A stretch of 64,000 nt of DNA from Styela clava. Lineage: Eukaryota. Below the pieces are notes generated by a model. It worked only from the letters and a program-made list of their open reading frames with translations. It made no database searches and was not told the DNA's origin. This document shows, piece after piece, positions 1-58,831 of this stretch (position 1 is its first letter; every line of letters begins with the position of its first letter). Location: the NCBI RefSeq assembly GCF_964204865.1, contig NC_135256.1, positions 2,356,001 through 2,420,000 of the forward strand. Direction: 5' to 3'. The position numbers were made by a program, and so were the translations under genes.

Positions 1-425
1 GTAAATGATTTCGTATTGCCTTTCTATTTGATCGAGAGAAGAACGATCGCCACATAGATTATTGTTTTCTGCAACATCACGAACCATCCGTTCTACCAAG
101 GTCGTTTTACCACTTCCTGCCTGGCCAACGATAGCTATGTGCCGATATTTATTTGAGTTGAGGCTTTGCAATATTTGTTTCAAATCCACCAATTTTCCTT
201 CATTGCCAAACTCTTTTGAAACACTGAATCCAACTTCCTTTTGATATTCTTTTTTCTTCGGTGCCATTTCACCACTGAAGAAATGAGATAGTTTTCGAAC
301 GCGAGGATTTGCTTCGAACTCTGGTTCGACCAGCCGTTGATCTTTGTACAAGTCGGTAACAGAACCCTTTGCTTTGCGGTATGCATCACGATTAACATCT
401 TTCTTGAATTTTGCTACGTATTTTT
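1..425 (-). CDS. 5' part of NACHT exon of paralog A
   Basis: Acceptor ttgcag| at 426-430. Open frame EKYVAKFKKDVNRDAYRK...RHIAIVGQAGSGKTTLVERMVRD...YEIIY with Walker A. About 16 differences in 142 aa versus the exon at 50698. Confidence 0.92.
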
Positions 426-3400: not shown

Positions 3401-6400
3401 AAGTAACACCAGTTCCAACAGCAAACTATTCATATAATCTGACATACCGTAAGTGGCAGGCATCACATACACTGTTCTAATCTGAATATTCGTTGCTTTC
3501 ATTTCCCCAACAGTAGCATCAGTTATATTGGTTTCTAAAAAATAAGTTCAATTTTCAAAGTTTCTGCTTTGAATCTCACAAATAATATGATAGGTATGTG
3601 TTTACATTGTGTATCCATTTCATACACGATGGCCTGCGTATTGTCAAGGGTTAAATTATATATTTGGCAAATGAGAATATATGACCAGATAACTGAACAT
3701 GATAACCTATGACCAGGCAACTGCGAACAACATGTGGGATATGTGCGCTGTGAGTTAGACTCGAAATAGAGAAACTAGTTCCAATGATCTGGATTATATA
3801 TTTGGTTGCACACATTAATTGATAAAGCAAGTTTATCAAGTGAGTCACCTAGAGGTTATTATGTTATATTGAAAATGAAAATGCATACGTAACATCTTGG
3901 TACGTTATAGCTTGTTTATATAAATACGCTAAGCAATTAAAAATTTTTTTTTTGCTGAATCTACATGTATCTTTATATAGGTACCAATGAATATTATTAG
4001 TTTGACCCTTATTTGGAAAAATATTTTTAATTTTTAATCATACCAGTTATGTTGGTTTGTTGCAAAGTCTCTGCCGAGATATGAGCTTCGGTTGCGGAGA
4101 GAGTTGCCTCTACTGTTTGGACAGTTGCCCTTTGCGACGCTATTTCTGTATGTTCAGAGATCACCGAAACATCTTTCGCAGTTTCTATTCTCATATCTTG
4201 AACAGCAGCCCCGGTAATGCTGGTTTCTGGAAATGAAAGTACAGGTTTCTTTAATAAAAGTTACAAAATCAATTTTTGCAATCCAACATTTTTCGATTTT
4301 TTCATGGTTTTGTTATTTTGTGTATGTCTACTGCGTATCCAAGCATGCTGGGGAAATAAACTACTGATCACTAACTAAGGCTCGATAGAAACATTCATGC
4401 TAACCAAACCATGAATCCAAATCCACAGCCCCAATCGTTGCTATAATTTATGGCTAAAACATTTTATATTTAATACCCAAGAAATACGACGAATAAAAAT
4501 AAAAATTTATTTTTCGACTAGGGTGAGTGAAAATTTAAATAAATACTCTAAATGAGGGGGTGTGCACAGTAGATTAGGGTGAATAAAAATTTAACTAAAT
4601 AGTTAAAGAGAGGGGATGTTCACAGTATGTTAGGGTGAGTAAAAACTTGACTAAATACCTAAAGTGAGGGGTTGTTCACAGTAGGTTTGGGTGAGTAAAA
4701 ATTTAACTAAATACTGAAAGTGAGGGGGTGTACACAGTAGGTTGGGATGAGTGAAAATTTAAATAAATACTCAAAATGAAGGGGTGTACACAGTAGGTTT
4801 GGGTGAATAAAAATTTCTCTAAATAGTTAAAGTGAAGGGGTGTACACAGTAGGTTAGGGTGAGAAAAAATTTAACTAAATACTTAAAGTGAGGGGGTGTA
4901 CACAGTAGGTTAGGGTGAGTGAAAATTTAAAAAAAAACTAAAAATGAGGGGGTGTACACAGTATGTTAGGGTGAGTAAAAACTTGACTAAATACTTGAAG
5001 TGAGGGGATGTTCAGAGTAGGTTCGGGTGAGTAAAAATTTACCTAAATACTGAAAGTGAGGGGGTGTACACAGTAGATTAGGGTGAGTGAAAATTTAAAT
5101 GAATACTCAAAATTAGGGGGTGTACACAGAAGGTTAGGGGGAATAAAAATTTATCTAAATAGGTAAAGTGAGGGGGTGTTCACAGTAGGTTAGGGTGAGT
5201 ATAAATTTGGCTAAATACTGAAAGTGAGGGGGGTACACAGTAAGTTAAGGTGAGTAAAAATTTACATAAATATTGAAAGTGAGGGGGTGTTCACAGTAGG
5301 TTAGGGTGAGTATAAATTGCACTCTAAATACTTAAAGTGAGGGGATGTTCACAGTAGGTTAGGGTGAATAAAAATTTAACTAAATACTTAAAGTGAGGGG
5401 GTGTTCACAGTAGGTTAGGAGAGTGCAAACTTAACTAAATACATCAAGTGAGGGGGTGTTCACAGTAGGTTAAGGTGAGTAAAAACTTGACTAAATACTT
5501 AAAGTGAGGGGGTGTTCACAGTAGGTTAGGGTGAGTAAAAACTTGACTAAATACTTAAGTTGAGAGGATGTTCACAGTAGGTTAGGGTGGGTAAAAATTC
5601 AACTCTAAATACTAAACGTGAGAGGGTGTTCACAGTAGGTTAGGGTGAGTAAAACTTGACTGAATACTTAAAGTGAGGGGAAGTTCACAGTAGGTTAGGG
5701 TGAGTAAAAATTTAACTCTAAATACTAAAAGTGAGGGGGTGTTCACAGTAGGTTCGGGTGAGTAAAAATTTACCTGAATACTGAAAGTGAGGGGGTGTAC
5801 ACAGTAGATTAGGGTGAGTGAAAATTTAAATGAATACTCAAAATTAGGGGGTGTACACAGTAGGTTAGGGTGAACAAAAATTTATCTAAATAGGTAAAGT
5901 GAGGGGGTGTTCACAGTAGGTTAGGGTGAGTATAAATTTGGCTAAATACTGAAAGTGAGGGGGTGTTCACAGTAGGTTAAGGTGATTAAAAACTTGAATA
6001 AATACTTAAAGTGAGGGGATGTTCACAGTAGGTTAGGGAGAGTAAAAATTTAACTAAATATTGAAAGTGAGGGGGTTTTCACAGTAGGTTAAGGTGAGTA
6101 AAAACTTAACTGAATACTCAAAGTGAGGGAATGTTCACAGTAGGTTAGGGTGAGTAAAAATTTAACTAAATATTAAAAGTGAGGGGGTGTTCACAGTAGG
6201 TTAGGGTGAGTAAAAACTTGAATAAATACTTAAAGTGAGGGGAAGTTCACAGTAGGTTAGGGTGAGTAAAAATTTACCTAAATATTGAAAGTGAGGGGGT
6301 GTTCACAGTAGGTTAGGGTGAGTATAAATTTAACTCTAAATACTTAAAGTGAGGGGATAATCACAGTAGGTTAGGGTGAATAAAAATTTAACTAAATACT

Positions 6401-18400: not shown

Positions 18401-20337
18401 GGAAATGAAATGAATGACCTTCTAGTTATATTTGTGATCGTATTTGATAGCATTGAACCTGGGTCAAAAAATAAACGGATGGCCAATACCTAATAGTTCA
18501 CAATTTCGAATACATTCGAATTTATTATTTTCGAATAAGAAATATCAAATAAATTCAGAATAAAATCAAGTAAAAGAATCCTATCATGGTGAAGGAATTT
18601 CCATACAATTGACTATAGAACAACTGTTATTGCTGTGATATTTTAGAATATTAATATTTCTATTTTTTCATAATTCGACACATCCAAGTCATCGGCCATG
18701 GATTTAAATATTCTGTGCCACAGAAAATTTTCCTGGTAAAGAGTTCATGATTTTAACTATCATTATTCAAATTATTCGCCAAAAAAAGTTTCGAATACTT
18801 TGATACTGGAATAATTTCGAGTTTTCGATTCGTTTTGGTCAACTCTAACTTAGGGTGCTTAAATATTTAACCATATATTGAAAGAGGGGGTTTCACTCAG
18901 TAGGTTAAGGTGCGTTACTTAAATATGTATAACTTTAGTAAGTTGAGAGAGTAAAAATTGAAGTAAATACTTAGGTTAGGATAATTAAAAATTTAACTAA
19001 ATACCAAAATTGGTCAGGGTTAGTAAGTTAAGACCTCTAACACAAGAATGCGACTTGTAGGCCAAAATTAAAGTAAGTTTGACAAGAGGTATAAAAATTA
19101 TTTACCATTAATGTTGGTTTGTTGAAGTACATTTGCAGAGATAATTGCCTCCGTTGCCGTAATGTTTGCTTGTTCAGTGGAAACAAAAACCTCCTCGGCT
19201 CGCACATTTGTCTCGTTACTCGCTGCAATATAGCCACATATGTCAATTAGGTATTAATTAGAAGCACTGTCTTGTGAGTTAAAAATGGAAAACTAAGTTA
19301 AAATAAATTAAATGTAGCCTGATATCATTGCCTATTGATATAATATTGCTTATAAATCAGACATTGTTAGATGTAAACTAAGAAGATAGATTAGTTCTAC
19401 TTTGTGATTTCACATGAATGTAAATTTAAATTTGTGGATTTGAAACAGAGGTTTCCAGCGGGTTAAAATGAACAAAATTGAATATCCTTACTTGCGGATC
19501 AAGTGATAAGTTTTTTCTGCATTTCACAGCCCTGACCGCACTTCTAGATGGCGAGAGGAATCGCATTTAACAAAGTCAAAACTAGAATTCGGTTGGAAAC
19601 CGAAGACTTATCGATCGAAGGTTAGGGGATCACCCAAAACAGTGGTCTTACTCCATAGTGACACCGTGTGTCCCATCACTAATTAAATAATACCTTGCTA
19701 TTTATACGACATAATCCATCAAAAATCAATAAGCATCTGATCTGAGCTAAGATGAATGCACATGCAAAATTTGGAGCCGAATAAACCTCGCTTTCGTGAG
19801 ATATCGCGTGTATCTAACACACAGTTATACAGACAAACAGAGACAAATACCTATAATAAATATCAACATACTTACCGATCAAGATCGATAAGTACATACT
19901 TACCGGTAATACTATGTCTGACTAAAATAAAGTCGGATATTAAAAATTTGGTGCCGTTCTCCCGGCTTGCACATCTCATTAGACTAATGATGAATAGAGA
20001 ACAAACTTATTTCTACTTTTAGTCAGGGGGGCGCTTGTTAGTCAAAAAGTCGTATGAGGGGGCGCTACAAAAAAAAAGTTTGGGGAACAATGTGTTGAAA
20101 CAATATTTCAGAAAGAATTATTTTACCGACGTGGCATTGTTCCGCAGAGATGACGGCATCTCTAGCTGTCACAGTCGCCTGTTCTGCTATCACAGATGCT
20201 TCGTCTACATGTGCAATATCCGAACGTTCTGCTGTCACGGAGACTTCTGCAGCGTTATTCACTCTCAAGTATTGCACAACGGAATCAGTTATGTCTGTTG
20301 ATGACACCGACACAGCTGGCCCGATCTCCTGCTCCAT
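1..20337 (-). CDS. NLR paralog A (N-terminal 61-aa tandem-repeat array + NACHT; 3' part outside window)
   Basis: Spliced model, all GT-AG, frame continuous: 20337-20127, 19222-19106, 14 repeat exons of 183 nt (18398-18216, 17485-17303, 16976-16794, 15772-15590, 14837-14655, 14327-14145, 13123-12941, 12188-12006, 11679-11497, 10475-10293, 9542-9360, 9033-8851, 7829-7647, 4226-4044), 2810-2718, 425-<1. Mirrors the + strand gene exon for exon. Confidence 0.85.
2230..2470 (+). mobile_element. Putative tRNA-derived SINE (degenerate)
   Basis: B-box-like ggtttgaatc at ~2299 in a GC-richer segment. Most of this segment has no clear counterpart in the corresponding intron of the other arm (~48780-48850). 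Confidence 0.45.
2718..2810 (-). CDS. Linker exon of paralog A, VGTGANMQPMTLGNIPALVGVSPTKKKKKKKG
   Basis: 93 nt, phase 1-1, flanked by ttcacag| and |gtgagc. Homologous to 48415-48492. Confidence 0.75.
4519..7416. repeat. Intronic ~56-bp minisatellite (~50 copies) containing TTAGGG
   Basis: Unit ttagggtgagtaaaaatttaactaaatactgaaagtgagggggtgttcacagtagg. Short 3-4 copy versions at ~8415-8620, 11061-11270, 13709-13915, 16358-16560; degenerate copy at ~18850-19030. Confidence 0.95.
7420..18000. repeat. ~2.65-kb higher-order tandem duplication, ~4 units, three repeat exons per unit
   Basis: Equivalent exon ends at 7647, 10293, 12941, 15590 (spacing 2646/2648/2649). Introns near-identical between units. 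Confidence 0.93.
8136..8414 (+). mobile_element. Short non-autonomous interspersed element with (ACAG)n tract, Helitron/Lep1-like; copies at ~10782-11060, 13430-13708, 16079-16357
   Basis: Begins actagaat, carries acagacagacagacaaata and ends ...cttaccgatcttaggatcgatc. Absent from sister introns (e.g. ~9860). A diverged relative lies at 19581-19894. Family assignment is inference. Confidence 0.55.
19106..19222 (-). CDS. Coding exon 2 of paralog A (half-repeat, ASNETNVRAEEVFVSTEQANITATEAIISANVLQQTNIN)
   Basis: 117 nt, phase 1-1, ttgcag| and |gtaaat. Homologous to 41765-41881. Confidence 0.85.
19581..19894 (+). mobile_element. Diverged copy of the (ACAG)n Helitron-like element
   Basis: Shares actagaat...aagacttatcgatcgaa, gtgtcccatcactaatta, ctcgctttcgtgagata and cttaccgatcaagatcgat with 8136-8414. 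Absent from the matching intron of paralog B (~41300-41340). Confidence 0.6.
20127..20337 (-). CDS. First coding exon of paralog A (MEQEIGPAVSVSSTDITDSVVQ...AEQCHV)
   Basis: ATG at 20337, 211 nt, donor |gtaaaa. Same length as 41050-41260. Diverged member of the repeat family. Confidence 0.8.
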
Positions 20338-41049: not shown

Positions 41050-44000
41050 ATGGAGCAGGAGATCGGGCCAGCTATGTCGGTGTCAGGGACACACATAACC
41101 GATTCCGTTCTGCAAGACTTGAGCGTGAACAACGCTGAAGAAGTCTCCGTGACAGCAGAACGTTCAGAAATCGCATATGTAGACGAAGCATCTGTGATAG
41201 CAGAACAAGCGAATGTACCAGCTAGAGATGTCGTCATTACTGCGGAACAATGCCACATCGGTAAGATAATTATTTTTGGAATATTGTTTAAACCCAGTGT
41301 TTCTGGCAACGCCGAATTGCCGTTGTTTCTCTTGACATCTAGAAGTGCGGTCAGGGCACTCAAGTTTGAAATATGAAAGACAAAAAAAATTTCACTCGAT
41401 GATATTTCAATTTGGTTCATTTTCGCCCATTGGAAATCGCTGATTTAAAGAGAAATAGCAGGCAAAACTGTATTTGAAATTTTCCCAAATTTCGCAAATT
41501 CTGATTGAAATGATGAAATCAGAATTATGTAAAATTACAAAGTACTAATGATGTAGGTTTTAGTTTACACCGAACAATGTATAGCTGATAAGCAAGCAAA
41601 CTGATAAGTATATGCAATATTAAATCAGTAGGCAATGGCATCAGATGTTGATTAATTTAAAAAAAAATAAGTTTACGGTTTTTAGGGCACAGGAAAGTGC
41701 TTCTAATTATTACTTAATCCAATTTATTTGGTATATGTGACTGTTATATGGTATTATATTACAGCGAGCAACGAGACAAGTGTGAAAGCTCAAGAAGTTT
41801 CCGTTTCCACTGAGCAAGCAAACACTAGAGCAGGGGAGGCAATTATCACTGCAACTGTACTTCAACAAACCAACATTGATGGTAAAATATTTTTATACCT
41901 CTTGTCAAACTTACTTTCAATGTGGCCAACAAGTCACATTCTTGTGTGAAGATTTTAAAATTTGAGTTCTGGCGATGTTTGTTGGAAGAAATGTTATGTT
42001 ATAGAAGAGTTATATGCATTAAATTGACTTTCTTTTATTTCAAACTCATGACGCATTCACTCACCCTCGGTGACTGCCAAGTATATTTCTACCGCTTATT
42101 TGCATCAATAATATTGCATTCGTTGGAGCCAATCTATGCTACTGTTGATTCACAAATTAGATTCGAAATGGGCTCTGCAACTAATCAGGAATACCTTAGT
42201 GTTGCTTTAGTTAATTTTATGGCTGTCAAATACGATCACTATTATAATTGAAAAGGTCATTTATTTCATTTCCAGAAACCAGCATTTCCGGGGCTGCTGT
42301 TCAAGATATGAGCATAGAAAGTGCGAAAGATGTTTCGGTGATCTCTGAACATACAGAAATAGCGTCGCAAAAGGCAACTGTCCAAACAGTGGAGGCAAAT
42401 GTTTCGGCAGCAGAAGCTCATATCTCTGCAGACACTTTGCAACAAACCAACATAACTGGTATGATTGTTTGTAAGTTTTCGACTTATTTTACAGAAAAAA
42501 GTTCTAAACCAGTGATTTGCCACCTTTTTGATACATTTCCTCTTGCCTATTACTTCTTCCATTTCCATGAAAACTCCACATTCAATAAATTTTTAACAGA
42601 TATTCATCTAATGCAACGTTGGATTTTACACGGTTCGAATAGTTGAAAAATTGTGTATAAATATATTTTGCAATAATACTAGAAAACTAATTGATATTAG
42701 TAAAATTGCAGCAATTTTTTATTTTTATCTGAAACAAAACTCCTCTTTGTGAAAAAAGTCCGCCTTGGTTAAGAAACACTGATCTAATCTATCGTGCTTT
42801 TATATTTTAAGAAGTTTTTATGATCAGATCAGAACTTCTCCTTTTTAGTAAAACTAACTAGAACAGGGTGGTCCCCTGGTGGTCAAGGTTGCGAGGTTGA
42901 AGGCCCGCAAAAACTTTTGAGGAGGTCTCGCGGGCCGCAGTCGGAGAAAGCCCAAAAGTGATCAAAACATCGCGAGTTTACTCACTTTAAATATATTTAA
43001 AAATGAGAGTTTATCGTTTTAATCAGTTTTTCAAGGAAACTATATGAAGTTATTTAGTTATTTTAAAATTGCTTCCCGAGAAATATTGTGGTATTTTCGG
43101 TATCTTTTTTCGCGTTTGATTTTGTAAAGTCGCTTAAATTTATATTCTTCCGGGACAGATATTACTTTGAAACACACCAGACACTGTGGTTTAACGTTGT
43201 CGTGTCTAAGAAAATGCGTCTCCTCTCAGTTTATCGCGATCACCTTTGTTCTACAATTTATATTTTTTCTACATTCATAGTATGACGAATAGTTATATTT
43301 AAAAAAAATTTATTACTTGTAGCGCGAGCAGTCCCAGTGCCACCGTCAAAAAACAACCGTCCGTATAAGTTGGGACCTCGGACCCAGATAATAAAAAAAA
43401 CAAGCTGGATCACACGGAGCTCTGTCAGCTCTGCGGTTCGTCAATGCCGTCACATGACCAACGCTTGAAAATAGAGGAGTGTTTTGGCAAAAATAAAGGC
43501 ACGAAATGCCTCTTCAAACGAGGAGTTACTTGACGCGAGCTCATCTCATTGGCTTAGTCTTGTCTACACAAGACAATTCATGCTCCGTTTACCTATCATA
43601 GGACGTCATTTCCATACAGGCACCGTCTTGACGTTTATATGTACAACAATGAAATTTCGTGATATTAACAAACAACAATCCCAACATCGGGATTAGGAAA
43701 AGGACTTTTCCCAGTGGGAATAGTTTGAAAATAAATCAAAATTGTTTTGCTAATAAATACAAATATCTGCCAATTGTTTAGTAGTGTACGCTGAAATTGT
43801 TCTGCGGGCCACATGCGGCCCGCGGGCCGCAGTTTGGACCATCCTGAACTAGAGTAATCCGATCCCATAGAAGCTTTCTGATCGTTTATTAGTAGGTAAG
43901 TTTAAATTCAATAGAAATACAGAAAATAAATGGCATTAGCCATTAGTTAATAGCAAAGATCAGGGCTTTGGTTGTGGATTCGAGATCATGGTTCTAAGCC

Positions 44001-47000
44001 ATTTAAAGAAATCTATTCGTTTCATTTCCAGAAACCAGCATCGCCGGTGCTGCTGTTCAAGATATGAGCATAGAAAGTGCGAAAGATGTTTCGGTGATCT
44101 CTGAACACACAGAAATAGCGTCGCAAAAGGCAACTGTCCAAACAGTGGAGGCAACTCTCTCTGCAGCAGAAGCTCATATTTCTGCAGAGACTTTGCAACA
44201 AACCAACATAACTGGTATGATTGTTTAAAAGTTTTCTACATCTTCAACAAAAAAGGGTTCTAAACCAGTGATTTGCCAACTTTTTTGATCTATTCCTTCA
44301 CTTGTCTATTCCCTCTTCCTATTCATGGAAACTCCCACATTTGATAAATTTTTAACGAATATTTAGGTAATGCAGCTCGCACTTTGGATATCGCGAGGTT
44401 TGAATAGTTGGAATTTGATGAATAAATATGTATGTATTGCAATAACCATAGAAATGAAACAATATTGGTAAAATTGCACTAAATTTTGGTTTCTCCTATT
44501 TGCGAAGAAACTCCTCGTTTAGGAAACACTGGTCCAAAATATTGTACACTCATGTTTAAACTAGATTTATTGAGTGACTCAGAACTTCTTCTATTTCTGA
44601 AAAATGAATCAAAGTGATCTTATCCCGTAGAAGTTTTCTATCTAATTATTGATTAGTTGGCAAATAAATTTTAATTCGTTGATTTACTTGGGTTTTAAAT
44701 ATGAAATGTACTATAAATAGATTATAGCAACAATGAGGGCTGTGGTTTCAGATTCATGGTTTGGTTGGAATGGACGTTTCTATCAAGCCTTAGTAATCAG
44801 TATTTTATTTCTCCAGCATGCTTGGCTACGCAGTGGGCACACACAAAGTAATAGCACCATGAAAAAAAATTGAAACACGTTGGATTGTAAAAAGTGATTT
44901 TGTAACTTTTATTAACTAAATCTGTTCTATTCATTCCAGAAACCAGCATTACCGGGGCTGCTGTTCAAGATATGAGCATAGAAAACGCGAAAGATGTTTC
45001 GATGATTTCGGAACATACAGAAATAGCGTCGCAAAAAACAACTGTCCAAACAGTAGAGGCAACTGTCTCTGCAGCAGAAGCTCATATTTCTGCAGCAGAA
45101 GCTCATATTTCTGCAAAGACTTTGCAACAAACCAACATAACTGGTATGATTGTTATAGCAATAAAACAATATTGGTGAAATTGCGCGAAATTTGGTTTCT
45201 CCTATTTGGAAAGAAACTCCTCGGTTAGGAAACACTGGTCTAAAATATTGTACACTCATGTTTAAACTAGTTTTCTCAAGTGACTCAGAACTTTATCTAT
45301 TTCTGGAAAATTACCCAAAGTAATCTTATCCCGTATGAGGTTTCTTGTCTAACAACAATTAGTCGCAAATAGATTTTTATTCCCTGAATTTTTTGAATTT
45401 TACATATAAAATGTACGAGTTATAAATTAGAGCAACAATCAAAGCTGTAGTTTCGGAGTCATGGTTTGGTTGAAATGAACGTTTCAACCGAACCTTATTC
45501 AGTAATTAGTAGTTTATTTCTCCAGCATGCTTGGACACGCATTATACATACCCAAAGTAATAGAACCATAAAAAAATTGAAAAAGGTCGGATTGCAAAAA
45601 CTGATTTTATAACTTTTATTAAAGCAATCTGTTTTTTTATTTTATTTCCAGAAACCAGCATTACCGGGGCTGCTGTTCAAGATATGAGCATAGAAAGTGC
45701 GAAAGATGTTTTGGTGATCTCTGAACATACAGAAATAACGTCGCAAAAGGCAACTGTCCAAACAGTGGAGGCAACTCTCTCTGCAGCAGAAGCTCATATT
45801 TCTGCAGAGACTTTGCAACAAACCAACATAACTGGTATGATTGTTTAAAAGTTTTCTACATCTTCAACAAAAAAGGGTTTTAAACCAGTGATTTGCCAAC
45901 TTTTTTGATCTATTCCTTCACTTGTCTATTCCCTCTTCCTATTCATGGAAACTCCCACATTTGATAAATTTTTAACGAATATTTAGGTAATGCAGCTCGC
46001 ACTTTGGATATCGCGAGGTTTGAATAGTTGGAATTTGATGAATAAATATGTATGTATTGCAATAACCATAGAAATGAAACAATATTGGTAAAATTGCACT
46101 AAATTTTGGTTTCTCCTATTTGCGAAGAAACTCCTCGTTTAGGAAACACTGGTCCAAAATATTGTACACTCATGTTTAAACTAGATTTATTGAGTGACTC
46201 AGAACTTCTTCTATTTCTGAAAAATGAATCAAAGTGATCTTATCCCGTAGAAGTTTTCTATCTAATTATTGATTAGTTGGCAAATAAATTTTAATTCGTT
46301 GATTTACTTGGGTTTTAAATATGAAATGTACTATAAATAGATTATAGCAACAATGAGGGCTGTGGTTTCAGATTCATGGTTTGGTTGGAATGGACGTTTC
46401 TATCAAGCCTTAGTAATCAGTATTTTATTTCTCCAGCATGCTTGGCTACGCAGTGGGCACACACAAAGTAATAGCACCATGAAAAAAAATTGAAACGCGT
46501 TGGATTGTAAAAAGTGATTTTGTAACTTTTATTAACTAAATCTGTTCTATTCATTCCAGAAACCAGCATTACCGGGGCTGCTGTTCAAGATATGAGCATA
46601 GAAAACGCGAAAGATGTTTCGGTGATTTCGGAACATACAGAAATAGCGCCGCAAAAAACAACTGTCCAAACAGTAGAGGCAACTGTCTCTGCAGCAGAAG
46701 CTCATATTTCTGCAGCAGAAGCTCATATTTCTGCAAAGACTTTGCAACAAACCAACATAACTGGTATGATTGTTATAGCAATAAAACAATATTGGTGAAA
46801 TTGCGCGAAATTTGGTTTCTCCTATTTGGAAAGAAACTCCTCGGTTAGGAAACACTGGTCTAAAATTTTGTACACTCATGTTTAAACTAGTTTTCTCAAG
46901 TGACTCAGAACTTTATCTATTTCTGGAAAATTAACCAAAGTAATCTTATCCCGTATGAGGTTTCTTGTCTAACAACAATTAGTCGCAAATAGATTTTTAT

Positions 47001-50000
47001 TCCCTGAATTTTTTGAATTTTACATATAAAATGTACGAGTTATAAATTAGAGCAACAATCAAAGCTGTAGTTTCGGAGTCATGGTTTGGTTGAAATGAAC
47101 GTTTCAACCGAACCTTATTCAGTAATTAGTAGTTTATTTCTCCAGCATGCTTGGACACGCATTATACATACCCAAAGTAATAGAACCATAAAAAAATTGA
47201 AAAAGGTCGGATTGCAAAAACTGATTTTATAACTTTTATTAAAGCAATCTGTTTTTTTATTTTATTTCCAGAAACCAGCATTACCGGGGCTGCTGTTCAA
47301 GATATGAGCATAGAAAGTGCGAAAGATGTTTTGGTGATCTCTGAACATACAGAAATAACGTCGCAAAAGGCAACTGTCCAAACAGTAGAGGCAAATCTGT
47401 CTGCAAACGAAGCTCACATCTCTGCAGAGACTTTGCAACAGACCAACATAACTGGTATGATTGTTTAAAAGCATTCCAAATATTTTGAACTTAAAGGTCG
47501 AACTGTCATTGATATATAACGATCCATGTAGATTCAGCGAAAATTTGTTTATGGTTGCTTAGCATATTTGCATGAACAAGCTATGGCGTGCTAATATGTT
47601 ACGTATGTAATTTCATTTTCAATTTAACATAGTATGTAATTCAGACCAAATCATTGGAACTATTTTCTCTACTTCGAGCCAAACTCACTGCAAACATATC
47701 CCACATGTTGTTCGCAGCTGTCAGGTCATGGCTTGTCTGACCATGACTGATGATATCACACTAAGGTGCTCAGTTATCTAGCGATATATTCTCAGTTGCC
47801 AAAAATATGATATAACACTTATCAATACGCAGACCCTCGTGTATGAAATGGATACACAGTGTGAAAACATACTTACTAAATTATTTGTAAGATTCAGCAA
47901 AAACATTGAAAATAAAACTGTTTTTTAGAAACCAAAATAACTGATGCTACTGTTGGGGAAATAAAAGCAACGAATATTCAGATTAAAACAGTGTATTTGA
48001 TGCCTGCCACTTACGGTATGTTAGAATATTTGAATTGTTTGCTTACTGTAAATAGACTTGTTTTTCAAAAAATCATCACCAAGTTATCAATATAACACCA
48101 AGCTATTTGATATTTCAAACCGTAACATGTAGTTGACAACAGCGGTGGACAATTTCCATGATTTTAGGAGCGACTTGGATCGTCAACCAAGAAATACATC
48201 GCTTTGCTCAAAAACGGTTCTTGAGTTCCACTGAATTGAGCCCTTGAACTCCGAGAGAATTTGATGACGGCTCTTACTAACATGAGGAAACAACAACTGT
48301 TAGGAGTCATGTTTTCTCGCCGTTTATTGGCGATCTATCACCATTAACGTGCATCAGGTTCCGTACATTTTGCAAACGTTTTTGGTCAAAACTCAAAGTT
48401 CATTGTTTACACAGTGGGAACGGGAGCAAACAAGCACCCGATGACGTATGAAAATATACCGGCACTTGTGGGCGTCTCACCAACGGCTAAGGGTGAGAGT
48501 TATTATTTCCTATTATTATTAGTTAAACTCTACCAACAGAAAGCAAATGCATTGACATATATTAGCCTTGTAGGATCTGCATGCTGAAGTCAGTCTACAT
48601 TCCAACCAAATCTTGTCAACTTGGAAGCAAAATGCTGCTTTTCAGGATAGGCTATGATTTACGTATTTATCCCAGAAAGGCGATAAGACGGCTCAATCAT
48701 ATGACAAACCACGGCCTCTCGTCCGGTCCCCATTTCATGTCAGCTATGGATTAGTTAGCCAGTTATTTGTTTTCCAAATCATGGACTTGATGGTGTAGGA
48801 AGCCGTATTCGACCAGCAGCAATCACTGAAATTCAATTTGCCTTCCTTAGACAACCTTTCTTAAATCAAGCCATGATAGTCTTATTATTATTAGGCCTCG
48901 AATATTTTTCATTTTGACAATGAATGTTACGTGTTTGAAATATCATTAATAAATCAGCTGCGCGGAGATCGTCTTCGACCGAATAGGAAAAGAGCAAATG
49001 CAGTGGTGCCAAATGCCAACTCTAAAACAGTGTCCATTCGGATTACAGTGTGCCACAGATGTTGATACTAAAACTAAACGTTTTTACCTATTATGCTTTG
49101 ACGGGATGGCACTATCAGGAATGAATATTACAGCCTGTGTTCTTCAAATCTCCATAAACAACAGTCTACTTGACTGTATACACTTAAATGCATTGTGACT
49201 TGAAAAATTTGTAACAGTCGCTCAAGGATTGCAAAATCAGGTCGAAAGCAACAACACTCGCCAAACAGTTGGTGTGGTACAAAAAAGCCGATAATTAATT
49301 TTAGTGTCACTCGGGTATGAACAAAGCAACAGATTTCTAAGCAGTGAAAGAACAAATAATTGCTATACCCAAACACAAATAAATTACAAATATAAGTCTC
49401 TGTTAGGCGAGCCAGAACTAACTGAGAACTGCTCAGCGGGCAATTAGCACAACGTGACAAAGTATAAAAAAACGCAAGTAGGAACACATGGTTCTAACCC
49501 AAAGTCAAACGGTCTCTTGCAACACTTAGTGGACATAAACCCACGGGTATATATGTCAGTAATGCACTTGTAATTCAACGGCCATTACAACAAACTACAG
49601 ACAAAATGCAAAAATAGTTTTATTTGTATTGAAACTGTATGCAATCGTACCATGCTTCCCTGTAATTTGAATTGGAAATAAAAAATATTGCTTTATTCCG
49701 AACGCTAATAATATTTTCATCTTGTTTGTATAGCTTCCGTTATTCATGTATTATACTTCAGCACACAGTAATCTGATACTAATACTAGTTTGTAGAACTC
49801 TTAATGACAGCATCTTCTGTTAGCGAATAACATTTCTATTATTTACAAGATTCGATATTAACGGTCGTCAGAGTGAAAAGCTTCATGCACAGACGCTGGA
49901 TATTGTCATGTTTATTCGAGAATTTCCTTCCAAAATATCAAATCCTAGGCGTTGAGAAATACTACATCAGTTGACATTTAAACTAACCATCCTATAGCTA

Positions 50001-53000
50001 ATTGCGGTCAACTCTGTCAGTCTGAATGAATAGACTTGGATCTCGTACGTCTATCGGGATTTGTTGCGCTTATAGAGCTGGAAAGCGATGTAGAAACGTC
50101 AATATGATTGATCAGAAATATTGAGAAACGGCTGCGCGTTTTTTTGTGGCTGAGAGTTTTGTAACGTACAGAATATCATGTATATTGACTTCTGCAGTAT
50201 GCGAAAGTTATGGTCGCCCGCAAAGTGTTTTTGCAATGGTCACATCAAGAATGCAATCTTTTCTAATTTCCAATTTTTTCCAAGCAAAAAACGAATCGGT
50301 CATGTAACAGTTATGGTTTGAGAATATTTATTATTTGTTGTTTAGATAACACATATATACTTGGCAAGGTTTTTTGAGGAAATATCAAATATATATAGTC
50401 AAATTAACAAATTAAATGGAACGTAAAAAATATAGGCTTATCAGCAACTGCGATTATTTTTGTATGGGTGTGTGTATTATCTGCATATTTAGTACACATT
50501 CATTTTTGTGTATGACCTTATTACCGATCAGTCAATCGCAATCTAATTTGAATACTTTAGTTTATCGCGGTCGAAAACAGGTTGGCCATCCCTGACTTTT
50601 TTTTTGTTTTCTGGAATAATGAAACAGACAGCTTAGGAAAAATATGAAACTTTAGTGCAGGATTAAATAGTGTAAACTAATTTTTAAAAAATTGCAGAAA
50701 AATATGTGGCAGCTTTTAAAAGAGATGTCAATCGTGATGCATACCGCAAAGCAAAGGGTTCTGTTACCGACTTGTACAGAGACCAAAGGCTGGTCGAACC
50801 AGAGTTTGAAGCAAATCCTCGCGTTCGAGAACTATCTCATTTCTTCAGTGGTGAGATGGCACCGAAGAAAAAAAAATACCAAAAGGAAGTTGGATTCAGT
50901 GTTTCAAAAGAGTTTGGCAGTGAAGGAAACTTGGTGGATTTGAAACAGATATTGCAAAGCTTCAACTCAAAAAAGAATCGTCACATAGCAATCGTTGGGC
51001 AAGCAGGAAGTGGTAAAACGACCTTTGTAGAACGGATGGTTCGTGATGTTGCAGAAAACAATAATCTATGTGATGATCGTTTTTCTCCCGACCAAACAGA
51101 AAGGCGCTACGAAATCATTTACTTTGTCTACATTCGAGATCTTCTTGATTCGGAGTCAATTAATGCGAAAGATTTACTTTTTGGAAACGTCATCACTGAT
51201 TCAAGTGAGGAAAGCATAAAATATGGATATGAATGGATCATTGAAAACCAGGAAAAGGTCGTATTTTTCTTTGATGGATTAGATCAGGCGACTTGGTCTC
51301 TTGGCGGACATCATCGCAAGATAAATCACAAGGATAAGGCCAGTACAGCAACGGTGATGTACAACGTTATCACTAGTCATCTTTTTCCCAGAGTTCAAAT
51401 TGTCATCTCCTCTCGCGAGCATTGCATAGCTTCTCTCACTGTGGACCTTCGACCCCAGCTTATCTACGCGTTAGTAGGTTTGAGCCCAGATGATGTCAAG
51501 AGATTATTCATTGCACTCCTTGGTAAAATCGGCCAACATCAATGGGATCGGATGTGTTCAACCTCTCCTGCAATTATCCCTCTGTCTTCAGTCCCAGTAT
51601 TTTTAATATACAACGCCATCGTTCAGAAGTTTAATCCGGAAAATCCACCTGATACCATGACAGGAGCTATGTTTGAGATCCTTGATATTCTTCTGCAATC
51701 TCAGCATGTCAGAGATAAGCAGGTTCTGCACAAGTTGAAAGAAATGGCTTTTCGAGCAATGAGCGAAGGACGAGTCGTCTTTACAAAAGATGAATTACTG
51801 AAGTTTGGATTAGATCCGGATTCGATTCAAGACCTGGTTATCAAAGTTCCAGGCCGCACAAGGGCGAGTCATTGCCTGCTTGAAGGAACCCAACAAATAT
51901 ATTTCTCACACCAAGTAATTGAAGAAAACCTTGCCGCCATGTTCGTGTCAGAAATTAGAGTTGAAGATTTCGAAGAATTCGTGAAAGGGTTCATTCATCA
52001 AGATCATTGGTCGATTGTTCGCAAATTCTTGTGTGGAATTCTTCTCAACCCAGATTTGGCAATTGATTGGGCTCCACAAATGCTTCAAAGTAAGATATCG
52101 CTGCATTTAACCTTTAGTAGTACAAAGCTGAATTTGGTTTCCTATAAAACTAACATCCCAAATTGAAGTAAGGAGGCTGTACGCAAGACGAAATTTTACA
52201 TAATATACCACAAATTCGTCAATACGCTTGTTTTAACATTTGTCATACTCACCCTCAAAAAAGTGGCGCAAACTTCGAAAGTTTAGTTTAGGTTTTTTTT
52301 TGTTTCTATTGGCCGCCTAGTTGTCGAAATAGAAAAGTCTTGCAACATAATTGTAATTGAATTACAAAATGCCGAACCTGAGAGATAAGGCTGTTTGAGT
52401 AGCATAAACGCCGATTTGCTTTATAAAGATCGTGTATTGCGTTAGGTCTAGTAGTTTCGCGAAATCCAGATTTGTACGATTAGAAGATGCATTTCAAACA
52501 TATTGGAACTATTAAATAATGGTATTTGAAATTCCCTATTTTTGTACAACGCCAAGAAGAAAAACTTCTGATTATTAATTTAACATATTTCTATTCGGTT
52601 TAAAGTATATTATTCCTTTGAATTATTGACAGTGCATTCGTAATCAACATTAATTTTTTTCAATAAATCTCAATTTAAAACTTATGGTTGTATTGTGTCA
52701 GCGAAGGAATGGCAGGTTATGCTCAATACTTGTTTTATAGTTAAAGATAAGAAGGCAAAAGAAGAAATATTGAGACGTAGCATGAATGAACAACTGAAGG
52801 AAGCAAACGATTCAACCGCTTTGATGGAATTGTTCGGAGCTTTGTACGAGTCGAATGACGCTGAATTGATTCGATCCCACGTTCATGATATTGATTTCAA
52901 GGAAGCAACAATCAACCCCAGTGGAATGCTGGCAATATCGTCAGTTATGCGTCGAAGTGGAAATCTAAATCTTCTGCGTTTTTCCTATTGCAATCTCACC

Positions 53001-56000
53001 ACAGAGATATTTGATATCATGATGTCAAATCTGAAGAATTCCCAGCTCAAGGTTTGTTTATTTCAAACTTCGCGATGATTTATCAACACTGCGTTATTCT
53101 CCATTGTTGCAATTATCAATGGCAGTCAACAGATTAACGCAAAATTACCTTGTTTGGCTCACTCATACCCTTATACTTTTGCAGTTTACGCTTTTCATTT
53201 GTTTCATTTACTTTTGATCGTATATTGTTGCATAGCAATGGAATATGTTTATCTGAACTCGAACCCCCGTCGCCGCTTGTTTGTTCTGATTGTTCACGCC
53301 TTCACTCTATTTTCATAAAGAGTTTTATGCAGACACTTCATCAATTAATATAATATAATTAATACTGACGCTAAGACAACTCACCACTGGTTGGCACACA
53401 ATTACATATATGGGACTGATGCCAATAAGTTGGATTCGTTTTGAAACCATCACATGGCAGCGATGCATTTTTATATCAGCTCGATAATTATTTCAGTTTG
53501 TGATTTGCAGAGCTGCAATGTTTGCTGGTATTGGCGTCTGAGTTTCATTTGAATTTCCTGTTGTCACAATTTTTGAAGTATGAAAATAATTTTATTTGAA
53601 ACTGCAAAACCTTCAAAAATAGAAAATATTAAACTGATATCGATTTTTCAACCCGTAGCGAGGAGTCATTTTATAAATTTTGTTCAGTATCACTGGATTG
53701 AATATTGCTATTATGTATACATAGGTCAAGAAATTTATCTTGAGCAACAGATTCAATGCTGAATTATTCGCTTCTGTTACAAAATTCACGGAATCTTATG
53801 TTGATGAAATCGTGTTGGAGATGTGCGTAGAAGAGAATGAATTTGGAATCATCAGTAGAAGCGTTATTTCTAAGAAAGTGAGTTGAAGTTACTAGATACT
53901 TTAAGGCATTTGCAGAATTGAAACAATTTTGACAATTGTTGGGCAAAACCTACCAGTTCTTGCTTGTATAAAGATGGAGATGAAATCACTTCATCATTGA
54001 CTACACATTTTATCATACAAGAATGAGGTGACTAGCATGGGGTTTGAACCTGAGATATCCAATCTGCACCGCAAACATTATCAATGTAAAATCACTAGCT
54101 CTCAAATATGTATATTTGCTGATGTTGCGGTGATGTCCACAGGGTTTCCGACCCAGCATTTACTACGCAATTTATCACATATGAATGAAGTGAATAGCAT
54201 GGGGTTTGAACCCGGGATATTTAACCTGCACCGCAAACATTATTAAGGTACGATCACTGGCTCTCAAATCTGTATATTTGCTGATGTTGCGGTGAGGTAG
54301 GTCCGTATACAGTACAATTTTTGAAACCTTTTATTTTGTTTGAAGTTTACAAGCCGATATCCTGTGACTCACACCACCAATTAAATATAAAAAGTGTCTG
54401 ATTCAACCGTTTTGAACTTTCAACCTGATTTCACTCAGATTATCACAGTGAATGCTGAATACACTTGATCTATCTTTATCCAGGTGTTTGTCAAGGAGGT
54501 AGATCTGTCGAGTATCAAGATGTCAGAACAATTTAGCATTGAAACTGGGATCGTTTGTTCCAAGTATAATGTTGAATGTCTGGGGCTGATCGATACTGAC
54601 TTGAGAGAGATTCATCTTCGTAATTTCTTGAAACATGTTGGGAATGGTAAAGTAAGTGAATAACTTTGTAAAAATATAAAACGAGAAGAAAAGTTCTGAT
54701 CAAGTTGATTTAAGATGCATTAAGAATTAGTCAAATATCAGGCATGGGGTCTGAAACCAGAATCTACAACCTGCAACGTCATGTTGCCTAATTTGCTGAC
54801 TCTTTAAAATTCCTAACTAATCATATTTTGGGTTGATGTACTGGCCCAGTGGCTAAAGTGAGCAACTGAACTATCCCAGTGCAAAAACTTTCTATTCAAA
54901 TCCCATGTCCAATGTCGTAAGCTTGCCGTCTCACCCGGGTGTAATAACTTGGTAAGCAATGCCGAACCAGAAATATTTCGGTCCTTCCTAAATGTAGTAA
55001 TTAATACCTTGCATAACAGTAGCTGCTTGTACAGAGCCTTGTTAGGAGTGGGGGTTGTGATACACCGTATAAAAAATATTTAGTAATACAATGTTATAAT
55101 GCCTCTTTTATACTAACGAAAAATACCACTAAAGGTAACTGGCATTTCGTGGTTAATTGAACACAATACATAGAAATGATGTAACTATCAACGTATTCCG
55201 CTTTAATATCAATGATTCTCATCCATGGGCCATTACAATGTACTCACTTATATTTCACGAGTGTCTCACACATTGGCACCGAACAAGTTGTTAGGTAAGT
55301 AATCCCCAGATGTGAGAAACTAATAATTCCAGGTTTGTTTTGAGACTGCGAATCATCTCACTCTCTGGATGACGTGCCAGGTAAGGGGTTGAACCCGGGA
55401 CATATGGTTCCAACACAGTTAATACAACCGAGTTAACCACTACACCACTGCGCTTACTGAACTCAATGAAAATATACGGTATTTCCCTACTAATATGGCC
55501 TAAGTATGGCACATGAATATATCTCATGCCAATTATAATCATTAGTGTCATTATTCATTCAGTTGAAAAAGCTCGATGTCGGCCACAATGAAAATCTTGG
55601 GGTTGACGGGTTGTCAGTCACAGGTATTATTGTGTCACAATGTGAAGTAGAGAAGGTTGGAATGCGGGACTGCAATCTGACAGCGGAAGCAATGAAAGCA
55701 TTCAAGGAAAATGTTCGGGATGCAAAGGTACAAATATTTTAAAACAAAACATTGGTTATTTAAAGATTAGTTTAACGGATCAAGCTAGGGCCATATGTAA
55801 CTGATGGTATTGAATTTAGCGTGACTGTGCTAATACGTAATTTATATTGAGTAACAAAAATCAAACTGCATTGAGTTATTATCAGGGTATGAGAAATTAT
55901 TCGCGGTCATATCGTTCATTCAGTTCGTATAGTTTTAATACTCCATCACTTCGAACAAGGCCAACCAATATGAAAAGAAAAAAGTCTTCATTACTTTCAA

Positions 56001-58831
56001 TCACTTTAAAACCAAAAAAAATAGGTTTATTTTCTTAAATTACATGACAAATAGATTGCAAGTCACTATTTACATTTTGAGTTTTTCGTCACTAATAAAA
56101 TCCATGAATTTCGGCAAATTCAGACTAAAATGCTTGTTGAAATAGATAACATTCCGCTCTATATGCCACATCAGTTGATGGCAACAATTGAATGCTCGTG
56201 CAGATTGTACCATGTTCAGCATTACAATATTGAGCCTTATCTCAACCATTTTATCATATCAATGAAATACGTTTCCATCACCTTCAATATCGTCTTGTAA
56301 TTCCAGCAATATGTCTGAACTAAGGTTATTGTTTACAATTCTTCACAAGGTAAAATATATTTTTGGAAATTTTCAAAAATTATGGAGATTTCATAAAAGT
56401 AACATGGTGAAGCAACATGGTAAACAATTAGAAATAAATATTATTCATGGTATTTCCCGAGAGTTTGAACCCGTGACCTACGTTACCACACCCGAAGTTG
56501 ATACTACCGAAAGTTAGTATTAATACTAACAAAGAAATCACTACACCACTACGGTCACTGATTATTCAGAGTATTTCCCAACTGCTATGACCTAAGTATG
56601 GCACATGGATATATCTCCTGCCTATTATAATCGTCATTGTTATTCATTCAGTTGAAGGATTTCTATGTCAGCGGCAATGAAAATCTTGGTGTTGACGGGA
56701 TTGCAATCACAGGTATTATTGTGTCACAATGTGAAGTGGAGAAGATTGGAATGCAGGAATGCAATCTGACAGCGGTAGCAATGGAAGCATTTAAGGAAAA
56801 TGTTCGGGATGCAAAGGTAGAATATTTTAAAATAAAACATTGAATAAAAATTAGTGTAACAGACCAAGCTAGGGCGATATGGAACTGATAGTATTAAATC
56901 GAGTGTGACAAATCCCATGTCCAATGTCGTAAGCTTCCCGTCTCACCCGGGTGTAATAACTTGGTAAGCAATGCCGAACCAGATAGATTTCGGTTCTTCC
57001 TAAATATAGTAATACCTTGCATAACAGTAGCTGCTTTTACAGGGCCTTGTTAGGAGTGGGAGTTGTAACACGCTGTATAAAAATATTGAGTAATGTAGTG
57101 TTAAAAATGATTAGTTTATACTTGCAAAAATTTACCTAAAAAAGACTGGCATCCCATGGTTGATTGGACTTAAAACATAGACACGATGAAACTATCCACG
57201 TATATCGGTTTGATATCAATGATTCTTATCTATGGGCCAAGCGTATCGCACTCAATTAAATTTCATGAGTGTCTCACACATTGCAAATTGCCAGGCAAGC
57301 AACCCCTAGTATGTGAAAAACTATCAATTTCGGGTTTGTGTAGAGCCTGTAAAACCTCTCACTACCTGGATGATCTGACATGTGATAGGCTTGAACCCGG
57401 GACCTATGATTCGAATACAGTTAGGTACTAAAGTTAATACTATCGAGTCAACCACTATACCACTGCGCTTACTGAACTCAAAAATGATTCAGGGTATTTC
57501 CCTATTTCTATGGCTTGAGTATGGCTCATGGATATATCTCATGCCTGTTATGATCGGCACTGTTGTTATTCATTCAGTTGAAGGAACTCAATGTCGGCAG
57601 CAATGCAAATCTTGGAGTTGACGGGGTGTCAGTCACAGGTATTATTGTGTCACAATGTGAAGTGGAGATAGTTAGAATGGGGAAATGCAATCTGACAGCG
57701 CAAGCAATGAAAGCATTCAAGGAAAATGTTCGGGATGCAAAGGTAGACTTATTTGAAATGAAACATTGTTTATTCGAAGATTAGTGTAATGTATCAAGAT
57801 AGGACCATATATAACTATGATAATGTGTAATTTATATCTATTGACAAAAATCAAAATTTATTGAGCTATGTCGAAGGTAAAAAAATATTTGGGGTCATAT
57901 CGTTCATTCAGTTCGGATTGTTTTAAAAACCATCACTCCGATGTGATAAGCATATAGTCAACAAAGGAACATAGACTGTAGAATTTATTTTTTCACATCT
58001 TATGAACAAACAGCATTGGCTTGCGCCAGAGTTCTTATCGATAATTTAATTTATATACAACCATTAGACAATCAGCATTACAAAACCTGAAGATTAAGGT
58101 AATTTGTTAATAAAACAATGAGTGTTGAATTTGAAACTGGCCAAACTTGGTCGACTAATAAAGCGGATCGATACTGAAGGCCTAAGCTAAAAATAATGGA
58201 AATTGTTCACACCGTAACATAAAAAGATTGACTAAATAGTTTAATTAACAGCAGTGCCCTATAGTAACGCCTTAATACGACTTGGACCACGAAAGTTGAC
58301 TCTGTTACTTGAACTATATTAAACTTTTGATTCCCCCGGAAAATTTTCAAATTTGGACTTCGATATTAGAAGTTGGTGTAAAAAAATCTAGCAATAAACA
58401 CCTGAATTCAGTCTGTTCGTCCTTTGTAATTTTTGATTGACTATTGATATGTATTAACTACGGAGAATGGAAATCAATCAGTTATAATCCACGACTAATA
58501 ATCTTCTACGGATTTTGTATTATTGATTATTATATGAACCTTACATGATCCAACACAATAATTCATTTTATCCTCCTTCCTTAGTCGTGCATTTGCAAAC
58601 CATGAATTATGTCTGAGTAACAAGTTTCATAATTCGTTTCAGATCAATTGGTTGGATCTGAGTTTCAACAAAGTCAGCAAACTCGGAGATGGAGGATTAT
58701 CTACAATCAGTGAAATTGTTCATCAATGTCAGGTTCAAACATTGAAGATGGTATTTTGCGAATTCAGCTCTGATCAGTTGAAAAGATTCAAAGCAATGAT
58801 CGCCGATACCGGGGTTGAGTTCGAATACTAA
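41050..58831 (+). CDS. NLR paralog B: N-terminal tandem-repeat array - NACHT - LRR (~1366 aa)
   Basis: Exons 41050-41260, 41765-41881, 42276-42458, 44032-44214, 44940-45143, 45652-45834, 46560-46763, 47272-47454, 48415-48492, 50698-52089, 52741-53051, 54484-54651, 55563-55727, 56652-56816, 57578-57742, 58643-58831 (TAA). All GT-AG with compatible phases, total 4101 nt. Confidence 0.87.
42276..47454 (+). repeat. Six tandem repeat exons of paralog B, including a 1620-bp two-exon duplication
   Basis: Exon starts 44032/45652/47272 and 44940/46560 are spaced 1620 apart. The 204-nt exons carry a 21-nt internal duplication (SAAEAHI x2). Confidence 0.92.
42864..43846. mobile_element. Non-autonomous hAT element in intron
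   Basis: Ends cagggtggtcc / ggaccatcctg, TSD aactagaa / aactagag (7/8 match), subterminal gcggcccgcgggccgc. Confidence 0.8.
50698..52089 (+). CDS. NACHT exon of paralog B
   Basis: Walker A GQAGSGKT, Walker B VVFFFDGLDQ, sensor-1 IVISSR, and winged-helix YFSHQVIEENLAA motif typical of animal NLR NACHT domains. Confidence 0.95.
52741..58831 (+). CDS. Helical/LRR exons of paralog B (ribonuclease-inhibitor-like LRRs)
   Basis: LNLLRFSYCNLT, VKEVDLSSIKM, three 165-nt exons (LKKLDVGHNENLG...VEKVGMRDCNLT...), last exon INWLDLSFNKVSKLGDGGL...EFEY*. Internal LRR exons are phase 0-0. Confidence 0.9.
54020..54300 (-). mobile_element. Tandem pair (~160 bp) of tRNA-SINE-like fragments; related fragments near 54745, 54840-54910, 55385, 56462, 57390
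   Basis: agcatggggtttgaacc (reverse B-box) occurs twice. tggcccagtggctaa (A-box-like) and attcaaatcc occur at 54842-54903. Confidence 0.45.

Follow-up and report, generated by a model that had tools for sequence, protein, structure and literature searches.

We analyzed a 64,000-nucleotide (nt) stretch of the Styela clava genome (C8:2356001-2420000, NC_135256.1; hereafter the window), which contains two NOD-like receptor (NLR) genes, A and B, arranged head to head. Coordinates refer to the window unless written as C8:position for loci in the genome. Gene B (41050-58831, plus strand) encodes a NACHT-leucine-rich repeat (LRR) protein with an N-terminus made of repeat exons. It is one of about ten NACHT-LRR genes that form a subfamily specific to Styela clava, and in all of them the N-terminus derives from one exon family: exon 1, phase 1-1 exons of 61-70 amino acids (aa) whose number ranges from 1 to at least 45, and one or two linker exons, joined in frame to the NACHT exon.

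Exon 1 of gene B (41050..41260) comprises the start codon (ATG at 41050), 9 residues and a diverged repeat unit, ends in phase 1 and matches the RefSeq model P0001 (LOC120328798) at 100%. It contains the segments VSVTAER, ASVIAEQ, ANVPARD and VVITAEQ and can be aligned to the unit. Exon 2 (41765..41881, phase 1-1) encodes 39 aa that represent the C-terminal half of a unit type that is older and longer (68-70 aa). Six repeat exons with open frames follow (42276-42458, 44032-44214, 44940-45143, 45652-45834, 46560-46763 and 47272-47454), four of them 183 nt long and two 204 nt long owing to a perfect 21-nt tandem duplication that adds one heptad. All 6 units of gene B and the 14 of gene A have a polypyrimidine-AG acceptor, a GTATGA donor, phase 1-1 boundaries and a glutamate codon split as G/AA. 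The first-pass annotation, made from the sequence alone, had placed only a short linker between this array and NACHT. A linker is indeed present but consists of two exons (47929..48015 and 48415..48492) plus a pre-NACHT segment of approximately 90 residues encoded by the NACHT exon. Linker exon 1 (29 aa; included in P0014, LOC120328799) starts like a unit (ET-I-D-A) and then runs into the most hydrophobic stretch of the N-terminus, whereas the 26 aa of linker exon 2 (phase 1-1) are rich in Gly, Pro and Thr. Mapping of P0014 places the NACHT exon at 50698..52095, with the pre-NACHT helix, the Walker A motif (GQAGSGKT) and the winged helix; its acceptor AG (50696-50697) yields an in-frame G/AA junction. 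The same model places the remaining exons at 52096..58831, which encode the HD2 and LRR region and end with a last coding exon at approximately 58640-58828.

Spliced contigs support the joining of these exons. We placed contigs of four public runs on positions 46500-52200; the assignment of the runs as RNA is a guess, but GT..AG-spliced joints are present. Contigs join unit 5 to unit 6 (46763>47272), unit 6 to linker exon 1 (47454>47929, GT..AG) and linker exon 1 to linker exon 2 (48015>48415, GT..AG), and, in a contig from a paralog with approximately 94% identity, linker exon 2 is joined to the NACHT exon at 50703. Unit-to-unit back-joints also occur among the contigs. RefSeq divides gene B in two: LOC120328798 (41050-46795) extends from exon 1 to unit 5 and runs into an intron, and LOC120328799 (47304-58831) begins at a methionine within the last repeat exon. 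The contig that joins units 5 and 6 bridges both halves. Furthermore, P0014 contains the last repeat, both linker exons and the NACHT exon in that exact order. The paralog models P0013, P0005 and P0012 each hold exon 1 and/or units, linker, NACHT and LRR within one protein, and RefSeq models contain 4-8 units. Together, the joints and the RefSeq models indicate that the repeats are spliced to NACHT as the first-pass annotation had supposed, with the path through gene B pieced from several contigs and models rather than from a single molecule spanning the gene. In one contig, linker exon 2 and NACHT are separated by 26 letters that are absent from the window; we assigned this contig to a paralog with a Lys-rich junction (approximately 94% identical) and not to an additional exon of gene B. 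Two intronic stretches (48601-48982 and 50320-50510) reached a summed contig depth of up to approximately 1200 in all four runs, with loose ends on both sides, and are probably expressed dispersed repeats rather than exons of gene B.

The body of the protein is that of a NACHT-LRR protein. Gene B matches the NACHT family (PF05729) with 71.1 bits (cut-off 26.7) and has the GQAGSGKT motif, which identifies a NACHT P-loop NTPase whose closest relatives in the PDB are NLRP1 (7crw) and NOD2 (5irm). The matches to NOD2_WH (22.1 bits, cut-off 23.1) and NLRC4_HD2 (19-24 bits, cut-off 33.1) fall just under threshold, and AlphaFold2 predicts helical bundles in these regions. The LRR assignment derives from the AlphaFold2 model of P0013, which has strand-helix repeats at residues 744-901 with a predicted local distance difference test (pLDDT) score of 75-93; the LRR_6 match is weak and PF13516 is precomputed for paralogs. 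Several paralogs are called 'NLRC5-like' in RefSeq, a name that mirrors NACHT similarity only. Pfam scans of P0001, P0004, P0005, P0006, P0012 and P0013 returned no death-fold (CARD, PYD, DD or DED), BIR or TIR match at E<=0.1, and neither FISNA nor B30.2 was matched in the subfamily proteins scanned.

Comparison of the paralogs revealed additional elements between the array and NACHT. The hydrophobic end of linker exon 1 contains a tyrosine, and its motif V-I-Y-N-x-x-G-N-Y-G was considered as RHIM-like and rejected, as it lacks the I/V-Q-I/V-G core and has no match to the Pfam RHIM model. A 47-aa module rich in Pro, Ser, Thr, Gln and Ala (QAEAS...KKISG) is found in 0-2 copies in this region (P0004, P0018, P0012 and P0015). 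Some paralogs (P0012 and P0015) have a run of 7-8 lysines ahead of NACHT that is absent in gene B. All of the paralogs compared have a conserved Y-V-A-x-F-K...N-R-D-A-Y helix ahead of NACHT.

The repeat unit has an unusual composition. Its consensus lacks Pro, Cys, Phe, Trp and Tyr altogether, and its 7 Glu, 2 Asp and 2 Lys leave it with a net charge of -7, in agreement with the composition initially described. The array as a whole is rich in Ala (17%), Thr (14%), Ser (12%), Glu (10%), Ile (10%), Val (8.5%) and Gln (8%), has no aromatic residues and is poor in Pro (0.3%) and Gly (1.6%). With Ile, Val and Leu at 21%, Thr, Ile and Val at 33% and a FoldIndex of +0.1, it is neither classically disordered nor globular in composition. 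The 61-aa and 68-70-aa types, exon 1 and exon 2 align as one family with length differences of exactly 7 residues. This bears out the proposals that everything upstream of NACHT except the linker belongs to a single repeat family and that exons 1 and 2 are diverged versions of the unit, exon 2 as half of the older type. The same annotation had parsed the unit into heptads. The quoted heptads (VSVISEH, TEIASQK, ATVQTVE, ATLSAAE and AHISAET) are all present and the indels have heptad length, but the periodicity itself is statistically weak: the circular self-similarity at lag 7 has a z of 1.1-1.6 in the 61- and 70-aa units and reaches 2.5-3.1 (lags 7, 14 and 21) solely in the C2-type unit. Isolated hydrophobic residues recur every 7 positions in the middle of the unit (V22, I29, V36, L43 and I50) and every 5 positions across the unit boundary (I50, L55, I60, I4', V9' and I14'). 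The autocorrelation of hydrophobic residues is negative at lags 3-4, evidence against an amphipathic helix; at lag 2 it is close to zero, so that classic alternating strands find no support, and at lags 5 and 7 it is modestly positive. Each unit conserves a V-S-V-I-S/A-E core.

A profile search identified at least 95 unit exons genome-wide and 11 copies of exon 1. Among the 11 NACHT exons that share at least 74% identity with the one in gene B, ten are preceded on their own strand by exon 1 and units, at distances of 3 to 146 kb, and NLRs with a NACHT at most 54% identical have neither exon 1 nor units upstream. The sole close paralog without detected exon 1 or units is the NACHT exon at C8:2140686-2142089 (plus strand), 85% identical to that of gene B. 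The number of units varies widely, from 1 in the C2 and C3 genes and approximately 3 in g218 and g179 to 6 in gene B, 14 in gene A and about 11-14 in g62 and g75. An extreme case is the paralog at C8:996505-1144239 (plus strand), where exon 1 is followed by at least 45 near-identical unit exons of 68-70 aa over approximately 115 kb; its NACHT exon has one in-frame TGA. The locus is a giant gene or else one in decay. A search with the unit profile against 1.84 billion protein representatives retrieved 7 proteins, all from Styela clava, and all 21 word-index matches to P0005 (E <= 1e-10) were also from Styela. The placement of the repeats in the effector position of the NLR thus stood up to scrutiny: they are spliced to NACHT, match no death fold or other Pfam family and are confined to one NLR subfamily.

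The units are under selection as protein and are exchanged between genes. Unit exons from different loci are 90-94% identical, and their flanking introns, compared without gaps, are 38-60% identical upstream and 42-82% downstream. The ratio of nonsynonymous to synonymous divergence (pN/pS) is 0.20-0.48 for the units (overall pN 0.055, pS 0.165) and 0.24-0.41 for the NACHT exons of the same genes. These ratios indicate purifying selection on the units, with a protein-level constraint about equal to that on NACHT. For distant pairs, however, pS is 0.34-0.41 in NACHT versus 0.14-0.21 in the units, so the units have accumulated less than half the synonymous divergence of NACHT, which indicates that they are being homogenized between paralogs. 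Some higher-order repeats of several exons are up to 100% identical and, therefore, very young duplications. Thus, exchange between paralogs keeps the units alike, and copy number shifts via very recent higher-order duplications.

The fold of the array was approached by structure prediction and profile comparison. AlphaFold2 modeled the 439-aa P0001 alone with a pLDDT of 34 and weak helices in the second half of the units, a result uninformative on the fold. When P0013 was modeled with 20 paralogs, residues 1-228 had a pLDDT of 20-41, the pre-NACHT helix 72-77 and the LRR 75-93. Neither the single-sequence nor the paralog-alignment models contained a solenoid, and a homotrimer prediction of two units (residues 111-232 of P0001 in three copies) scored 0.00, which is evidence neither way. 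These models suggest that the array is disordered, a suggestion that stops short of demonstration because the alignment is shallow and low AlphaFold confidence would be expected for any such orphan family. Among profile matches, Pentapeptide_4 scored 29.5-30.4 bits (cut-off 38) on the unit boundaries with no single stretch significant and did not match the 70-aa type. HET-s_218-289, RHIM, Ses_B and NACHT_sigma had no hmmscan match at E<=0.1 or 0.01. A profile of all unit types found nothing significant among PDB sequences (best E-value 0.49, for the P22 tail needle gp26 and pangolin ACE2), the ESM Atlas feature search returned no usable neighbor and a Pfam scan of single units gave nothing meaningful. 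Whole-protein scores for SAM_Ste50p and SMODS were discarded as noise summed over the repeats, since no single stretch was significant. A beta-solenoid assignment calls for a hidden Markov model (HMM) match above threshold and a regular coil period; the array has neither, and its spacing mixes 5 and 7 residues. The spacing, the beta-branched residues and the 7-residue indels hint at such a fold, but no prediction came out in its favor. Hence, the beta-solenoid, intertwined beta-helix or amyloid-like fold initially proposed is not supported by the models, given the low pLDDT, the sub-threshold pentapeptide score, the lack of lag-2 periodicity and the absence of HET-s and RHIM matches.

Repeats encoded by exons upstream of NACHT have a precedent in zebrafish. 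Groups 2-4 of the NLR-B30.2 genes (NLR-C) have several exon-encoded repeats of approximately 30 aa N-terminal to NACHT, of unknown function (Howe et al. 2016, PMC4852459). There are two types of these repeats, variable in copy number, shuffled among family members and confined to that NLR type, and the genes are a clustered, lineage-specific expansion in which a death fold, FISNA and B30.2 are additionally found in certain groups (PMC4852459). The Styela genes are similar in having tandem units, one per exon, upstream of NACHT, variable in number and exchanged between paralogs. They differ in that the units are 61-70 aa long and strongly acidic and have no detectable sequence relation to those of zebrafish, the profile search having retrieved Styela proteins only. 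The first-pass annotation had suggested an undescribed class of animal NLR. The Styela module is indeed undescribed as a sequence family, but the claim is weakened by the zebrafish genes: because these already have exon-encoded N-terminal repeats, the Styela module does not represent a new category of architecture.

Other NLR systems offer partial parallels. Each known amyloid signaling motif is a single 20-40-aa element whose turns contain Gly, Asn or Gln. The amyloid NLRs of fungi and bacteria (HET-s/NWD2 r0, PP, sigma and BASS) and RHIM proteins resemble the Styela genes in having a non-death-fold, non-globular N-terminal element, and in Styela, too, a second, non-NLR gene may carry that element. 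Unlike these motifs, the Styela array is made of 61-70-aa units, 1 to at least 45 in number, each with a charge of -7, almost free of Gly and without an amyloid prediction, and the candidate partner is not located beside the NLR as an operon-like pair. CIITA (NLRA) has an acidic N-terminus, a Pro/Ser/Thr region and NACHT-LRR; the protein is rich in aromatic residues, not repetitive and specific to vertebrates. The Styela proteins share with it the acidic non-death-fold N-terminus, the low-complexity linker and NACHT-LRR, but their array is repetitive and aromatic-free, and no homology to CIITA is detectable. There is also some resemblance to pentapeptide-repeat beta-helix proteins (PF13599), as five to six consecutive pentads with a central Ile, Leu or Val lie over each unit boundary and give a weak HMM match. 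However, the score falls short of the gathering threshold, the spacing elsewhere in the unit is 7 residues and AlphaFold2 did not predict a beta-helix.

The genome-wide search for units outside NLRs, another of the early suggestions, yielded one candidate locus. At C8:2290164-2298994 (plus strand) we identified the eleventh copy of exon 1, which shares 90% identity with its gene B counterpart, together with exon 2 and a single unit. Four phase-1 tail exons related to the models P0007 and P0008 come next, with a stop after 2298994 and all exons in frame. The tail is very acidic and clearly disordered by FoldIndex (-0.37), and P0007 and P0008 were named 'SPT5-like' in an older RefSeq release. 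Paralogs of the tail without the N-terminal exons are located at C8:2255 kb, 2479-2495 kb and 1648 kb. The exon order makes C8:2290164-2298994 a candidate non-NLR partner of the NACHT-LRR proteins. We also considered P0007 ('SPT5-like') itself as a carrier but set it aside, as its first two exons could not be placed beside the tail exons and the model may be chimeric.

Beyond the anatomy, expression and selection described above, how the array works is a matter of hypothesis. We tentatively favor, as a reading with a reasonable though less than even chance of being correct, a non-globular and acidic array for multivalent docking, with a valency set by exon number and effective upon clustering of NACHT. 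In the resting monomer, the array would be an extended acidic tail with no preformed fold. Oligomerization of NACHT would gather many arrays, and their avidity for a partner, or for one another, would climb sharply, so that the arrays could act as a docking and signaling platform standing in for death-fold polymerization. The V-S-V-I-S/A-E core would be the candidate contact with the partner, by strand addition. Several observations weigh against this proposal. The composition is atypical of disorder (FoldIndex +0.1, Ile+Val+Leu 21%, Pro 0.3%, Gly 1.6%) and favors regular secondary structure, and the pN/pS of the units equals that of NACHT, a constraint tighter than expected for a mere spacer. 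The low AlphaFold confidence on which the absence of a fold would rest is what a shallow alignment of an orphan family is predicted to give.

The array could instead fold, alone or when clustered, as a beta-solenoid or amyloid-like polymer that templates a unit-bearing partner, as in the fungal HET-s/NWD2 and RHIM systems. The spacing of aliphatic residues (one per 5 or 7 positions, each with a small residue at i-2) is reminiscent of beta-helix sides, the Thr+Ile+Val content and near-absence of Pro would suit strands, the unit types differ by indels of exactly 7 residues and the sub-threshold Pentapeptide_4 matches fall at the unit boundaries. The C8:2290164-2298994 locus, with exon 1, exon 2, one unit and a different tail, also looks as a templated partner would. 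Yet AlphaFold2 gave very low confidence and no solenoid, the pentapeptide matches stay below 38 bits without a significant stretch and skip the 70-aa type, and no HET-s, RHIM or other amyloid-motif Pfam model matched at E<=0.1. Moreover, lag-2 autocorrelation is close to zero, a charge of -7 per unit opposes in-register stacking and in both length and number the units far exceed the known 20-40-aa motifs, so we regard this polymer as unlikely, albeit a serious contender. A narrower version, in which a conditionally folding beta-strand array, tunable by copy number, polymerizes or templates upon NACHT clustering and recruits the non-NLR protein of C8:2290 kb, seems to us doubtful; if true, it would be an animal counterpart of the amyloid-type NLR signaling of fungi and bacteria, made of whole exons. 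Between these two in our estimation, and unlikely as well, is a bait or tripwire, in which a pathogen factor modifies or cleaves the repeats to free the NLR, or an autoinhibitory tail that shields a basic pre-NACHT patch. The N-terminal region of NLRP1 is a precedent for release of this kind. The highly variable and recently changed copy number (1 to at least 45) fits such a role, as do the N-terminal position and low predicted order, and the Lys-rich patch of several paralogs could pair with the acidic tail. But the units are conserved and homogenized rather than diversifying, gene B itself has no Lys-rich patch and we identified no protease site or host-target mimicry.

Two further explanations are less probable still. 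The expansions may be largely neutral products of unequal crossing-over, with only exon 1, one unit and the linker being of consequence and the extra units tolerated or skipped. All exons are phase 1-1 and could be skipped without a frameshift, the C2 and C3 paralogs make do with a single unit, the gene with at least 45 units has the in-frame TGA in its NACHT exon and the higher-order repeats, up to 100% identical, are very young. Set against this, all 33 units examined keep an open frame and splice sites, pN/pS is approximately 0.3, spliced contigs join consecutive units and RefSeq models hold 4-8 of them, making neutrality of the expansions a poor prospect. A transactivation region like that of CIITA is the most improbable of these options. 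The order of an acidic N-terminus, a Pro/Ser/Thr/Gln-rich linker, a basic patch resembling a nuclear localization signal and NACHT-LRR parallels that generally known for CIITA, P0012 and P0015 have their lysine runs ahead of NACHT and the 'NLRC5-like' names point in the same direction. However, those names reflect similarity in NACHT only, the lysine run is not conserved across paralogs and acidic activation domains typically contain Trp, Phe, Tyr and Leu residues that the units lack.

According to a 2024 survey, ascidian NLRs have no N-terminal domain (PMC11508797). The Styela genes provide, by comparison, one ascidian NLR subfamily with a conserved, expressed orphan module in that position. 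Together with zebrafish NLR-B30.2, they represent a second independent case in which peptide repeats built from exons replace or supplement death folds, and this points to a solution for NLR output or regulation that has recurred and is yet to be explained. Because unit number ranges naturally from 1 to at least 45 and a candidate non-NLR carrier exists, studies relating valency to function would be straightforward to design.

Gene A, on the minus strand of the window, shares the layout of gene B. Its exon 1 (20127..20337) is 80% identical to that of gene B, and sequence comparison places a half unit similar to exon 2 at 19107-19220. The 14 repeat exons, of 183 nt each, were delimited by splice sites and frames from 18398 down to 4044, and 12 of them lie within four copies of a 2648-bp higher-order repeat of three exons. 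Linker exon 1 (3449..3532) is 86% identical to its gene B equivalent, and the 5' part of the NACHT exon is at 1..414, with the remainder beyond the window (C8:2354969-2356000). Rfam and tRNA scans of the 64-kb window returned nothing. The window also has conspicuous noncoding repeats. A 43-nt tandem repeat (approximately 51 copies, 22685-24888) occupies part of the 20.7-kb spacer between the divergently oriented NLR genes. One intron of gene A (4519-7411) contains 51 copies of a 56-nt G-rich minisatellite, and versions of 3.8 copies occur in each 2648-bp repeat (8413-8624, 11059-11270, 13707-13918 and 16356-16567).

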